Shown piece after piece: positions 553 through 15,454 of a stretch of DNA of 20,523 nt. This DNA comes from Geosiphon pyriformis uo1. Taxonomy: Eukaryota > Fungi > Glomeromycota. Positions within the stretch are counted from its first letter, which is position 1. Every line of letters starts with the position of its first letter. The notes under the pieces were generated by a model. It ran no database searches. It had not been told where the DNA came from and saw only the letters and a list, made by a program, of their open reading frames with translations. The translations under genes were made by a program, and so were the position numbers. Location: the NCBI GenBank assembly GCA_016748015.1, contig JAAOMT010000460.1:4973-25495 (forward strand). Direction: 5' to 3'.

Positions 553-717
553 GGAAAGAAAGAAAGAAAGAAAGAAAGAAGTAAGTAAGTAATGAATGAA
601 TGAATGAATGAATGAACTATTTCGATACCCAATTTTAAATTTTAATTATCTAAACTTTAAATACATACGTACGTACATACATACATACATACATACATAC
701 ATACATACATACATACA

Positions 718-761
<44 letters not shown>

Positions 762-778
762 TACACACACACACACAC
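553..778. repeat. compound tetranucleotide microsatellites (GAAA, AGTA, ATGA; then TACA, TACT, CA)
   Basis: Directly visible in two blocks, 553-616 and 661-778. Confidence 0.9.
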
Positions 779-3815: not shown

Positions 3816-3835
3816 TATTATTATCATTATTATCA

Positions 3836-3868
<33 letters not shown>

Positions 3869-3873
3869 TACTA

Positions 3874-3921
<48 letters not shown>
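3816..3921. repeat. (ATT/ATC)n microsatellite
   Basis: Directly visible. Source of poly-Ile pseudo-ORFs. Confidence 0.9.
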
Positions 3922-4821: not shown

Positions 4822-5558
4822 TCAAACGCACGTGTAAATAACATCCATTGGACTTCTGTTCATTATCGATTGAGATCCCGACATATTTACAACGTTATCA
4901 ACAGCATTGCTTGCAACAATAAATGGTGATTGATCCACTAAATTTGTTGAATTTGTAAAGGAATTCGCGTACATATCACCATTTTGTAAAAGTTTTTCCG
5001 GCTGACCAAAAATTGAAGCTAAAGAATTTGGAACATCAAAATGTTTTGCTTCTGTTGTTTGTTGCATACCAGACATTGACACGATTGAACTGGCCGAATG
5101 TGATCGTTGAAATGGGGGATATTGAAGTGAGCCTGGTTGATTAGTTATCGGTGACGATGATATCCCGACATTAAGCTGTTGAGACATATGATGATATGAT
5201 TGGGACTGCTGTTGTTGTTGTTGTTGTTGTTGTTGTGAGTGTGCAAAGGTTATCATGGATGCTTGAGCTGGTTGAGCACGAACGAATGGTTGTTGTTCAA
5301 TGGTAGGATAACCCATCATTAAAGCATATCCTTGATTTGAATGGGGATGATGATGATGATGAATATCCAGATGTTGTGATGGTTGACGTAATCGTAATTG
5401 TTGATGCCCCGTGATGAATTGATGTTCGTCGGAAGAGAACCTTCGCTGCCTTTTGGGTAACGATGGCTGCCTTGTACTAAAAGCTGTAGTCACGAATTGA
5501 CCGCTGTTAGTAGGAGTTAAGCTTGATAAAAATGACTGTGATCCCACCATATTGTGTA
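4822..5558 (-). CDS. areA: areA-like exon 5 (C-terminal Q/H/S-rich region, ends ...[10 protein letters not shown])
   Basis: Frame is open for 253 codons (5583-4825) with exon-like GC. Contains [11 protein letters not shown], poly-H and poly-Q. TGA at 4824-4822. Confidence 0.78.
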
Positions 5559-5914
5559 CTGAATGTGATTGGGAAAATACATTTCACAATGACATTCTTT
5601 TACCCATACACTCATGATAGTACCACCCGTTCAAATTTGAAATGTTCCCTTACCAGGTTTTGGGGCTTTCCCAGCAGCAGTCGTTCCACCACGATTTCGT
5701 TTTTTTATAACGTCCGTTTTCAAACTTAAAGGTCGAACAACACCGTGTAATTTTAAAAATAATCCACAGGCGTTGCACAAAGGTTGACCGTCAGGATTTC
5801 TTCGCCATAATGGAGTCGTTTGAGTATGACAATTTGTACAAGTGGTAGGATTAGTTGATTTATGGGAAGAACTGGTCAAATTATTATTACTGTTATTAGT
5901 ATTACTGTCATTAC

Positions 5915-5956
<42 letters not shown>

Positions 5957-6449
5957 TACTATTAAGATTGTTGTTATTGTTGTTGTTGTTGTTGTTGCCA
6001 CTATTATTATTATCATTTATGACATCTTTTGATAATGAGGATGTAGTTGCCGTTGCTGCTGCTGATGATGATGAGTTATATGTAGATGATTGTATTTCAT
6101 CACAATGAGATGGTGACCGAGGCCGCTTACTGGTTGGTGAAGCAGCTCTTTCACTTACTATTAAAGATGAAGAACTAGTCATATCGACGTCACTCCCATC
6201 ACCACTTAATAATAATGGAGGAGGTGGGGACGCCAATACGTTAAAAGTGTTTTTGTTATTCATGCTATGATCAATGATTGATAATGATAAAGAATTGTCA
6301 GAGGAATGTCTTTGGTTGTTAATGTTTGTTTGAATGGGTTTATCATGTTTGTCTTCACTGAGATTACTTCCAGTATTAAAAGTGTTTGGATTGGTATTAT
6401 TTTGACTATGATCTGAATTCATCATGGTGAATGAAGTCACTGTTGGTGG

Positions 6450-6497
<48 letters not shown>

Positions 6498-8246
6498 GGA
6501 TGAGGATGCAAGTAATTGTGAAGGATTAATGCTGGAAAATGGGGTTGTAGAATTTTGCGTCGTATCAACACCGCTCATCATATTGTACATTTTGACAAAA
6601 TCAAATAACGGGGAATCTGATTGACCGGATATTAAATCGGTGCCAGATGAATAATTATGGAAATAGTACCCAGCACTCTCTTCTGGTGTGATTGGGGTAC
6701 TGCTTGCCGAATGATCAATTGGAATACCTGGAAAATGGGGAATAATAATCGAGTCAATAAATGAATCTTTAAAAAAAAAAAGCAAGTAAAATTAAAATTT
6801 TATATCAACCTGCAGTGGCAGCGGCACCATAAGTCTCCAAAGTGTGTTGACCATATGGGGAGTTATATGTTAAATTATATTGAGCATTTGAAGATGTGAT
6901 AGATGCAGACATTGAATCAGATATATCTGTATCTGAATCATCACCGAGGTCATTGGGAATGGTAATGCTTGATTGAGATATCGAGGAGTTAAATTGAGAT
7001 TGTCGTCGCTAAGATTTCGTTAGAGAAAAGAAATCACGTGTTAAATTTAATAATAAAAGTAATAATAGTAGTAGTAGTAGTAGTAGCAGTAGTAGTAGTG
7101 ACATAAAGTGAAATGAAAATTTTTACCTTTTTATAAGCCATACAATTTGGAATTGAAATTATACCTTTGGTTGCGCGTGATAACGGTAAAGTGTATGGTA
7201 CGTTGTGTGGGGTGTTAATTCGTGTAGGTAAACCTGCTGTTGTATTTCTCCTTCCCATAAGATTTTGGGATGTTTGTGATGGAAAACCGTAATCTGAAGT
7301 GGCTGACGCCTCGAAAACAAATGGATTATAGCCAGAAGAAGACGAAGAAGCAGGAGTTTCAAAACCAGAAGAAGGGTTTGAACAATTTGTAGTCAATGAT
7401 GCCATTGGGATTGGTATAGCAGATGTCATGGATGAAAGAACGGGTGAGGAGGATGAGGCTGAAGAAACTGATCGATTTTCATCGTTAATACTTGAATCTG
7501 GAGATGCAACCATTCCCGAATGATCTTCAAAAAACATGATTTTATTAAAAGTATTTTCATTCTTTTGTCGATTATTATGAGCAGAACTTGGTGTCATTGC
7601 AATGTCTTGTTGTGTTTGACCAATTTCAGATGACTCGGACATATGAATGTCTCCAAATTGATACGAATCGATTCCTTCTTGAAGATTTCTATTGGAAAAA
7701 AAAAAGAATAAAAAAAGAATAAAGTTGAATTAGTTTTAGAGATATAAACTAACATAATCATATATAATAGATTGATCGTTTAAAAATTTAAACCACTTAC
7801 TCGCTAGATCTTGATATTTTAAAGGTTTGTGTAGAGGTTAGGGAAGAAGTTGGTAGACCGGAAATAGTGCTTGCCGAGGTTATGGAACAAGTAGGACTTA
7901 TTGGAGGACTTGTTGGATTATTCTGTCGCTCAAAATTTGATTGCTCATAACTCCAAGTGTCACGTTTTCGTAATGAAATTGCCATGGCACGCCAAGTCAA
8001 ATTCTCTAGTCGTCTACCGTTTGGTAAAGCGTCCTTTGCTTTGCTATAAAGTCGCCAGACGGACGCCGCCAGCGGGTCTTTTTTTGCCTCATTTACCCGA
8101 GTATCTTGGTTGGTTAACAACGACGACGACGACGATAGTTCCATATGGTTATCGGATTGTCGTCTTCTTGGTGGAAAGTTATAGGGTTCTTTAAGTTCAA
8201 TTTGATATGGAAACTGGGAGGAGGTTATATCTTCACTTGAAAACAT
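4822..8246 (-). CDS. areA: AreA/NIT2/Gat1-like nitrogen-regulatory GATA zinc-finger transcription factor, 5 exons: join(8246..7801, 7688..7127, 7008..6810, 6727..5654, 5558..4822), 1005 aa
   Basis: N-terminal motif [33 protein letters not shown] (DUF1752/PF08550 type). Finger and basic tail [50 protein letters not shown] closely match AreA/NIT2. Four GT-AG introns with matching phases (2,0,1,1) join the ORFs into one 3018-nt frame. ATG lies in an A-rich context (caaaaATG). Confidence 0.92.
5206..5235 (-). repeat. coding (CAA)n, 10-Gln tract
   Basis: In frame in exon 5. Confidence 0.88.
5559..5653 (-). other. intron 4 (95 nt, GT-AG), atypical and exon-like
   Basis: G|GTAAGG donor and TTTTCCCAATCACATTCAG|TA acceptor. 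This is the only AG in the segment that joins exon 4 in frame to the long downstream ORF. About 36% GC, no canonical CTAAC. Confidence 0.72.
5654..6727 (-). CDS. areA: areA-like exon 4 (poly-S, poly-N, GATA finger)
   Basis: Frame of ORF 5631..6785. Ends at CCT G|GTAAGG. Confidence 0.88.
5691..5840 (-). other. GATA zinc finger (C-x2-C-x17-C-x2-C, 5840-5766) plus basic tail
   Basis: 17-residue loop with Leu at loop position 7 ([10 protein letters not shown]), as in the AreA/NIT2/Gln3/Gat1 class rather than the 18-residue WC class. Confidence 0.97.
5880..6017 (-). repeat. coding (AAT/AAC)n microsatellite, Asn-rich tract
   Basis: About 35 Asn in 46 codons, just N-terminal to the finger. Confidence 0.9.
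6450..6506 (-). repeat. coding (TCA)n microsatellite, 19-Ser tract
   Basis: (GAT)n on the + strand, in frame in exon 4. Confidence 0.9.
6728..6809 (-). other. intron 3 (82 nt, GT-AG)
   Basis: GTTGAT donor, TTGAC branch-like site, TTTTCCAG acceptor. About 22% GC, phase 1. Confidence 0.8.
6810..7008 (-). CDS. areA: areA-like exon 3 (absent from the ORF track): [66 protein letters not shown]
   Basis: 199-nt stop-free frame between the TAG acceptor and the CAG|GTTGAT donor. Phases match both neighbouring exons. Confidence 0.82.
7009..7126 (-). other. intron 2 (118 nt, GT-AG) containing an (ACT)n microsatellite
   Basis: GTAAAA donor, CTAAC branch site (7023-7019), TTAG acceptor. About 25% GC. 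Splicing creates YKK|RRQSQF. Confidence 0.85.
7127..7688 (-). CDS. areA: areA-like exon 2
   Basis: Open S/T/P-rich frame matching ORF 7034..7642. Ends AAG|GTAAAA, phase 0. Confidence 0.85.
7689..7800 (-). other. intron 1 (112 nt, GT-AG)
   Basis: GTAAGT donor, CTAAT branch site (7733-7729), poly-T tract, TAG acceptor. About 19% GC by hand count. Restores frame into [21 protein letters not shown]. Confidence 0.9.
7801..8246 (-). CDS. areA: areA-like exon 1 (contains DUF1752 motif at about 7980-8078)
   Basis: ORF from ATG 8246. Ends at consensus donor GA|GTAAGT (7800), phase 2. Confidence 0.9.
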
Positions 8247-9266
8247 TTTTGAATATTTGTATTTTCCACTTTTGGGTCTTTAGGGGAAAAGTTTAAAAGG
8301 TTGTAAAAGATGAGTAGAATCAGTTTATGAAGAGCGTGTGAGTTGAAAGTCGTTCCTTGTTTGGTATAGGTGGGGAAACTAATTAAACTATCGACAAAAA
8401 TATTGTTATTGGTTTTTTTTTATTGTTGTTGTTGTTGTTGTTGTTGGATGCAATTTTTTGACGTTTCGGTTCCTGTCCGTCTTTTTTTTATTATTGCTGG
8501 CTTTTCTTTCCTTCTTTAGTCGGAAAAAAATAAGGGTAATAAGGTAGCAAGTGAAGTGAAGTGAAGTGGAAGGGAGGACGGTGGATGTTTTGAATAATTT
8601 TTCGAGATTTGATTAAGAGATGAAAATGAGGAAACTTTTTTTTTTTTTACAAAAATTGGCCGAACGAAGATGATGATAATGAAGAAGAAGGTGATGATGA
8701 TGATGATGATGATGCAAAAAAATTATAAGAAAAAATGAAGTGCGAGTGCTCAATTTTTATAGTTTTTTGTTTTCTATTGTCTGATGTCAAAAAGATAATT
8801 TTTTAGCGGAAAAAAAAAAAGCACAGACAAAGTTACTTTTTTTAAAATCTTGGATTCGTGTGTTAAAAGCTTTTTTCAAGTTACACTTGATCTTACTAAT
8901 CGAGCACTAGTCTACTTTTCACGTGATTAGGAAAGAGATATTTGAAGCTTGCTTTTTACGAATATGATAAAGTAATAATTTTTAAATTTTTATACTTCTC
9001 AAAGAGGCTGTGAGGTTTTTTATAAGAAATATGAACTTGATTTATAGTAAAGCCGAATCTCTAGCGTAAATTAAATTTTTGTATATAGTTGATAAACAAT
9101 ATAAAGGAATAATAAAAATAAAGTAAGCTAAATTAAAATGAAGTAAAAGTAAAGTAAAGTAAAGTAAAGTAAAGTAAAGTAAAGTAAAGTAAAAGTAAAA
9201 ATAAAAATAAAAATAAAAGTAAAAGTAAAAGTAAAGAAATAAAAGAAAACTTTATTTTAGTATATT
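8247..9266 (-). promoter_or_regulatory. putative long 5' leader / proximal promoter of areA-like gene
   Basis: No sense-strand ATG for 1,020 nt. Sense-strand CAA, CACTT and CAT repeats and pyrimidine tracts. TATAAA candidates at about 8761, 8994, 9024 and 9046. TCACGTGA at 8919-8926. Confidence 0.5.
9141..9235. repeat. (AAAGT)n grading into (AAAAAT/AAAAGT)n
   Basis: Directly visible. Confidence 0.9.
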
Positions 9267-10199: not shown

Positions 10200-10307
10200 T
10201 ACTACTATTACTATTACTATTACTATTACTATTACTATTACTATTACTATTACTATTACAATCACTATTGCTATTACTAAATTTATTACTATTCCTATTA
10301 CTATTAC

Positions 10308-10364
<57 letters not shown>

Positions 10365-10411
10365 TATATTACTATTATTATATATTATTATTATTATTAT
10401 TATTATTATTA
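10200..10411. repeat. (TATTAC)n followed by (TAT)n
   Basis: Directly visible. Confidence 0.9.

Positions 10412-15389: not shown

Positions 15390-15454
<65 letters not shown>

Follow-up and report, generated by a model that had tools for sequence, protein, structure and literature searches.

The origin of new spliceosomal introns is a long-standing question, and well-documented births are scarce. The founding papers on intronization are said to be those of Irimia et al. and of Catania and Lynch, both from 2008. In the NMD-driven model of intron birth, a nonsense mutation comes first and is rescued by cryptic splicing. Exitrons (exonic introns) are alternatively spliced, protein-coding internal parts of exons. 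In fungi, intronization was reported in Cryptococcus, at five cases among 28,256 introns, in a study which also found that most intron boundary changes involve alternative splicing (Roy 2009, PMC2740785), and in Schizosaccharomyces, where its frequency is low (Zhu & Niu 2013, PMC3629103). Short, lineage-specific intron gains are also produced by introner-like elements and transposon-derived introns (PMC3609843, PMC9860276).

Here, a further candidate is described in an AreA-like gene of Geosiphon pyriformis, contained in a 20,523-nt stretch of contig JAAOMT010000460.1 (the whole stretch of DNA analysed, hereafter the window). With a probability of roughly 0.7, the 95-nt segment at 5653-5559 is a young spliceosomal intron that arose by intronization. 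Like the fungal intronizations, it would have come from an internal piece of a coding exon in which point mutations created GT..AG boundaries and which is excised in frame, with orthologues that retain the piece as coding sequence, an exon-like composition and weak internal signals. The published cases were confirmed with cDNA, whereas the splicing of the Geosiphon segment is deduced from sequence. The segment also differs from them in that it already carries two stops and a frameshift, so that it is no optional 'exitron', and in that it would remove a motif conserved throughout the subphylum from a single-copy regulator. Its place inside an ancestral coding exon, its ancestral length of 96 nt (a multiple of three) and its exon-like GC content recall an exitron, but an exitron is translatable when retained, which is precluded here by the two TGA codons and the frameshift. 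As with introners, the segment is a short and lineage-specific intron candidate; unlike them, it is present in a single copy and is homologous to the coding sequence of its own gene. The locus is probably a new, unusually legible case of a known, rarely documented mechanism, and not a new kind of event.

The AreA-like gene lies on the minus strand (8246-4822) and was rebuilt as a five-exon model of 1005 codons (Table 1), the 3018 nt of which contain one stop codon, at the end. It shares with AreA/NIT2/Gat1-type factors the combination of PF08550 with a single C-X2-C-X17-C-X2-C finger followed by KKRNR. The single finger, of type IVb and present with its basic KKRNR tail in exon 4, is 90-95% identical to those of named areA/NIT2 proteins. 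Because PF08550 is found in exon 1 and the PF00320 finger in exon 4, 'AreA-like' is a fair name for this architecture, by which the gene is predicted to encode an AreA/NIT2-type GATA factor, a putative nitrogen regulator. The ..WEWLTMSL end of Dikarya AreA has a role in NmrA binding. This C-terminus is missing from the window and from the Glomeromycotina orthologues, and within the fetched set it was seen in P0024.

Table 1. Parts of the AreA-like gene and of its putative fourth intron (positions in the window)
Feature	Position	Strand	Remarks
Exon 1	7801..8246	-	ATG at 8246; ends in phase 2; frame check, PF08550
GATA_AreA motif (PF08550), in exon 1	7980-8060	-	E=5e-14, 52 bits, cut-off 20.9
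Intron 1	7689..7800	-	112 nt, GC 18.8%, GTAAGT...AATAG, CTAAT branch motif
Exon 2	7127..7688	-	frame check, matches in Ambispora gerdemannii
Intron 2	7009..7126	-	118 nt, GC 25.4%, GTAAAA...CTTAG; CTAAC 11 nt before end
Exon 3	6810..7008	-	frame check, matches in Ambispora gerdemannii
Intron 3	6728..6809	-	82 nt, GC 22.0%, GTTGAT...TCCAG; TTGAC branch motif
Exon 4	5654..6727	-	GATA finger, basic KKRNRGG stretch, linker; ends ...GKAPKP + G
GATA zinc finger, C-X2-C-X17-C-X2-C	5739-5840	-	PF00320, E=4.7e-18
Putative intronized intron 4, phase 1, GT..AG	5559..5653	-	95 nt; homologous to 32 coding codons
TGA no. 1	5631..5633	-	on Gly codon (GGT/GGA/GGC) invariant in 22/22 aligned orthologues
1-nt deletion	5607..5608	-	Val/Ile codon before MGKR: window ATGAGTGT-ATGGGTAAAAGAATG vs relatives ATGGGTGTGATTGGTAAAAGAATG
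TGA no. 2	5584..5586	-	immediately 3' of conserved MGKRMSL
Exon 5	4822..5558	-	244 sense codons + TGA at 4824-4822; open frame, conserved islands

Several features of the gene and its surroundings may be recorded here. Intron 3 contains two in-frame AG acceptors (6767/6766 and 6728/6727); with the AG at 6767 as acceptor, a possible alternative 3' splice site, the intron would shrink to 43 nt and the protein would gain 13 residues. Exon 4 contains trinucleotide arrays (5880-6017 and 6450-6508); written for the plus strand, these are (ATT)n, which encodes long poly-Asn, and (TGA)n, which encodes about 20 Ser in a row. Poly-Asn and poly-Asp runs are found at the corresponding site in the Ambispora orthologues. 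Non-coding microsatellites are dense in the window (661-777, 1047-1158, 2830-2941, 3816-3921, 9115-9249, 10203-10411 and 15394-15452), with the units (ATAC)29, (TAT)37, (TGTTA)22, (TAT)35, (AAAGT)n, (TACTAT)35 and A59, and there are almost no long single-frame ORFs besides the AreA-like gene.

The segment starts with GTAAGG and finishes with TTCAG, between the end of exon 4 (...GGG AAA GCC CCA AAA CCT G at 5654) and the onset of exon 5 (TA CAC AAT ATG GTG). When read on from exon 4 it gives GKGTFQI, a stop and TGGTIMS, followed by a 'GT' that is one base short, and then runs into exon 5; all three lesions are present in the assembly sequence. Beyond the second TGA the frame is open for 253 codons, up to the stop at 4824-4822. 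The GC content of the segment is 35.8%, compared with the much lower values of introns 1-3 (Table 1) and with 36-42% in exons, a contrast drawn from three introns together with the profile of exons and non-coding DNA across the window. A search of the segment for a yTrAy branch motif found none, its A/T runs are all of 4 nt or less, and its longest pyrimidine run is 7 nt, short by comparison with introns 1-3. The absence of yTrAy is unremarkable, as it recurs in 46% of composition-matched shuffles. An earlier note, made from the window's letters before any comparison with relatives, had described the boundaries, both TGAs, the missing base, the GC contrast, the 253-codon frame and the lack of a branch motif, and all of these descriptions hold. 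It had also counted as evidence that the segment becomes an open frame once one indel and two stops are repaired, which turns out to be no better than chance: 91% of the shuffles need two stops or fewer and 66% need no more than one stop plus one indel, while introns 1-3 need one or two stops each when one indel is allowed. Being almost an ORF was consequently rejected as stand-alone evidence, since 66% of composition-matched shuffles are as good, and the signal in the segment is real only because of its homology to orthologues.

Orthologues were recovered by a HMMER search with the exon 4 open frame and by a word search from the best full-length match. They come from Ambispora, Acaulospora, Diversispora, Funneliformis, Glomus, Rhizophagus, Gigaspora, Racocetra, Cetraspora, Dentiscutata, Entrophospora, Paraglomus and Jimgerdemannia, with further ones among JGI metatranscriptome proteins. 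Directly behind KKRNRGG..GK.PKP, all the orthologues carry GKGT[IV]Q[IL]G.GGASMGVMGKRMSL.., followed by ..VLSTSAP....; the peptide is present in P0002, P0151, P0005-P0012 and others. For alignment, the read-through of the segment was entered with an X at each of its three breaks, and it aligns to GKGTIQIGAGGASMGVIGKRMTLGG in P0002. The DNA likewise corresponds base for base to that of the relatives (for example, ATGAGTGT-ATGGGTAAAAGAATGTCATTG in the window against ATGGGTGTAATGGGTAAAAGAATGTCACTA in Diversispora), and the alignments through the segment, of protein with 22 relatives and of DNA with eight, are free of gaps apart from the one missing base. A G.GGASMGVMGKR-type sequence was found at exactly the place of the segment in 32 orthologues among 249 fetched proteins, all 32 belonging to Glomeromycotina, to Jimgerdemannia (Endogonales) or to JGI/Logan proteins of that type; within the fetched set this post-finger motif is thus particular to Glomeromycotina and Endogonales, and it was not found in the Dikarya AreA/NIT2 proteins checked. 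By these alignments, the putative intron is homologous to coding sequence of its orthologues. The idea that a piece of disordered linker had been removed therefore needs qualification: the piece does correspond to 96 nt in frame behind the finger, but it is not featureless, as it holds a motif conserved in Glomeromycotina and Jimgerdemannia.

The relatives were also inspected at the level of the gene. Six genomic loci were examined, in Ambispora gerdemannii (L017), A. leptoticha (L023), Rhizophagus irregularis (L019), Gigaspora margarita (L020), Paraglomus brasilianum (L021) and Diversispora epigaea (L022), which cover the four orders Archaeosporales, Glomerales, Diversisporales and Paraglomerales. 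In all six, a single open exon extends from the finger to the stop codon, the open frame covering 350-430 aa upstream of KKRNR and 228-308 residues downstream of it to the stop. In A. gerdemannii, R. irregularis and D. epigaea, the matches of the window's exon 4 and exon 5 peptides share one frame and are separated by 87-123 nt. By contrast, exons 1-4 have their matches in different frames with short gaps between them in Ambispora, which indicates that introns 1-3 are old and shared with Ambispora, and that intron 4 is not. The closest relatives over the part from the finger to the tail, including the linker, are P0002 and P0151, whose metatranscriptome contigs are intron-free and keep the segment. 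In a quick maximum-likelihood tree (IQ-TREE) of the exon 4 piece, the window is sister to Ambispora (SH-aLRT 93). An intron at the position and phase of the segment was looked for in the six genomic loci and was not found, and as far as these loci and contigs represent them, the relatives lack an intron there. An ancient conserved intron was ruled out, position and phase not being shared with the orthologues.

The prediction of the earlier note that orthologues would lack the intron and carry a peptide like GKGxxQxGxGGxxMSVMGKRMSLxN after KKRNRGG was borne out in 32 orthologues and six genomic loci, and its reading of the segment as intronized coding sequence gains support, the outcome that would speak against it, namely a conventional intron at this position in orthologues, not having been encountered. 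An ordinary old intron with a chance resemblance to a peptide would be in keeping with the chance-level near-ORF property, but this is an extremely improbable reading in view of the base-for-base alignment with the relatives' coding sequence and of the fact that no relative has an intron at the position.

Two observations concern the relatives' own gene models. The deposited model of A. gerdemannii, P0005 (772 aa; GCA_910591945.1, L017:5321-6418), omits in-frame stretches of a fully open exon, one of which holds a conserved KKQRRFSSNEQ island, and another of which is a 625-nt piece upstream of the finger; the omitted stretches look like over-predicted annotation introns that are not real. In D. 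epigaea, the region of exon 1 (GATA_AreA) has two matches of equal identity, about 790 nt apart (L022:1695-1949 and 2482-2736), which suggests that the 5' part of the gene has been duplicated in tandem; this may account for the long model of 1124 aa.

The AreA-like locus and the segment are present in a single copy in the 128.3-Mb genome (792 contigs), so that the segment is not a repeat or introner, and the locus does not represent one of two haplotigs. An introner or transposable element-derived intron was accordingly ruled out, as only its own locus matches in the genome. Searches for a closer relative or for a Geosiphon transcript, in two scans of metagenomes and metatranscriptomes, found neither: the metagenome scan with exon 5 returned 597 pattern matches, none of which was confirmed, and the degenerate pattern GGT[TA]AAGKAPKP (inside exon 4), run against metagenomes and metatranscriptomes, recovered the P0151 contig and, as a chance match, a GC-rich bacterial sequence (L025), and nothing else. 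A word search with exon 5 alone among candidates of 133-423 aa gave no match, a result that carries no weight, as the real proteins have 800-1100 aa. Two other loci in the genome, C683:548736-549323 and C566:69431-70249, encode two GATA fingers each; these double-finger paralogues have open frames of 411 and 562 aa and are 42-47% identical to the finger of the gene. The best match of the HMMER search, P0001 (385 aa), combines a kinase-like N-terminus with two tandem AreA-type GATA fingers, an architecture unusual among the matches.

The boundaries of the segment keep the reading frame. Within 400 nt, 57 frame-keeping GT/GC..AG pairs would remove both stops, and the pair 5653..5559 (CTG/GTAAGG...TTCAG/TA, exon borders marked by slashes) is the shortest of them and the only one with a consensus-like donor, the other donors being of the GTGGAA or GTTATA kind. 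GTAAG occurs no more than twice in the 3018 nt of exons. The donor is as good as those of introns 1-3, and the length lies inside the 82-118 nt range of these introns. The donor falls within Gly-Lys codons, which read GGT AAG in the window, GGT AAA in Ambispora and GGC AAA in the metatranscriptome relatives, and a synonymous change of AAA to AAG appears to have given rise to GTAAG. The acceptor TCA G/TA stands opposite TCA CTC of Ambispora (S-V-H-N against S-L-H-N in the protein alignment), and its AG may stem from a C to G substitution that replaced Leu by Val, a step which is less secure, given the variability of the region and the distance of Ambispora.

Because the segment has no yTrAy motif and a pyrimidine run of only 7 nt, splicing of the putative intron 4 could be inefficient. 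Splicing might also use other boundaries, for example 5653 to 5484 (170 nt), or be partial, with regulated retention giving a truncated isoform beside the full one. The pair 5653..5484 is likewise frame-keeping, its AG being preceded by a GTGAC-like element, and inefficient or alternative splicing is frequent among young introns. The 170-nt version, however, would also delete the ..VLSTSAP.. island, which is still recognisable in the window, and alternatives of this type are very unlikely.

The distribution of damage along the gene bears on two further readings. Three disabling lesions fall in the 96 ancestral nt of the segment and none in the other 3018 nt; the chance of three lesions lying within 50 nt of one another in a 3114-nt ancestral CDS is 7.7e-4. 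At the lesion density of the segment, about 23 lesions would be expected in exon 5 (Poisson P(0) = 1e-10). None of 20000 shuffles reproduced the open frame of exon 5; the remaining two frames of the exon contain 12 and 9 stops, and the exon keeps conserved islands, including ..LS..P.., and conserved columns. At columns conserved in at least 90% of 22 orthologues, the window departs from the conserved residue at 4 of 9 within the segment and at 2 of 59 within the flanks (Fisher p = 0.002), the flanks being the finger, the linker and exon 5. The four mismatches of the segment concern the invariant Gly, a Ser changed to Ile, the Val codon with the deletion, and an Arg changed to Ser. The MGKRMSL of the segment is still identical to the consensus peptide, so that either the origin is recent or the evidence of decay is weak in that part. 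Since dS against the four nearest relatives is saturated or undefined in all three parts compared (exon 5, segment and finger), the case for constraint on exon 5 rests on its open frame and its kept motifs. As judged by these comparisons, coding constraint has been lost in the segment and kept in the flanking exons, the lesions are confined to the segment, and the rest of the predicted gene is intact, all of which supports intronization.

If the segment were left unspliced, the gene would be truncated or dying, with translation ending at the TGA at 5633-5631, a tail-less protein of about 760 aa with the finger, and exon 5 as an undecayed remnant. The weak branch site in the segment fits this reading, and a finger-containing product could still bind DNA, but we consider it unlikely: all sequence behind a first stop would be neutral, yet both further lesions fall less than 50 nt from it and none in the next 735 nt (approximately (50/800)^2 = 0.004), exon 5 has escaped the lesions expected at the density of the segment, its conserved islands are kept, its open frame is not reproduced by shuffling, and it would have to be a coincidence that the one good donor of the region and a frame-keeping AG enclose the lesions.

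The lesions could also belong to an assembly or sequencing artefact, or to a minority allele of one nucleus type, the real last exon being intact. Glomeromycotina are multinucleate and the locus lies among microsatellites, both of which would favour such an explanation. The assembly is described as obtained with a k-mer binning approach, which was also applied to an Illumina-sequenced genome (PMC9453076); Illumina data, presumably those used here, would not be prone to error clusters of this type. An artefact would call for two wrong substitutions and a non-homopolymer deletion, each an independent error, together with several further replacements within 50 nt and none in the 3-kb flank, all falling by chance between in-frame GT..AG sites, and a second copy or haplotig is absent from the assembly. 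This explanation is distinctly improbable.

Under the preferred reading of the segment as an intronized piece of coding exon, the last exon of the ancestor would have continued without a break from a point upstream of the zinc finger as far as the stop codon, encoding GKGT.Q.G.GGASMGVMGKRMSL behind the finger. In the Geosiphon lineage, point changes would have created a good donor (GGT AAA to GGT AAG, giving CTG/GTAAGG) and an acceptor (TCA CTC to TCA GTA, giving TTCAG/TA). Splicing between the new sites would remove exactly 32 ancestral codons in frame and join ...GKAPKP to exon 5. Once out of the mRNA, the segment would no longer have been selected as coding sequence, and would then have gained the two TGA codons, the 1-nt deletion and the replacements at conserved residues. 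In this scheme, we infer the removal of the segment from the mRNA, the order of events and the exact ancestral bases at both splice sites. The order could be reversed, with a nonsense mutation first and rescue by cryptic splicing second. Recoding or readthrough of TGA was rejected as an explanation, because a frameshift lies between the two TGAs.

The locus displays most of the steps of an intron birth: a known ancestral state, a donor and an acceptor apparently owed to a synonymous and a conservative change, respectively, an exon-like composition with weak internal signals, and early decay (two stops and one frameshift) confined to the putative intron. The predicted product would be without a 32-residue stretch holding a motif that is kept by all other sampled Glomeromycotina and by Jimgerdemannia. 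To our knowledge, Geosiphon is the only glomeromycete housing nitrogen-fixing Nostoc. A rather unlikely extension is that nonsense on the invariant Gly came first and was followed by rescue, and that loss of GGASMGVMGKR, or regulated retention of the stop-bearing intron with a tail-less isoform as its product, alters nitrogen sensing in the Nostoc symbiosis. If the nonsense-first order were true, the single-copy AreA-like regulator would have lost a motif kept in all other Glomeromycotina. The putative loss of so deeply conserved a motif from a member of a master-regulator family marks the motif itself as worth study.
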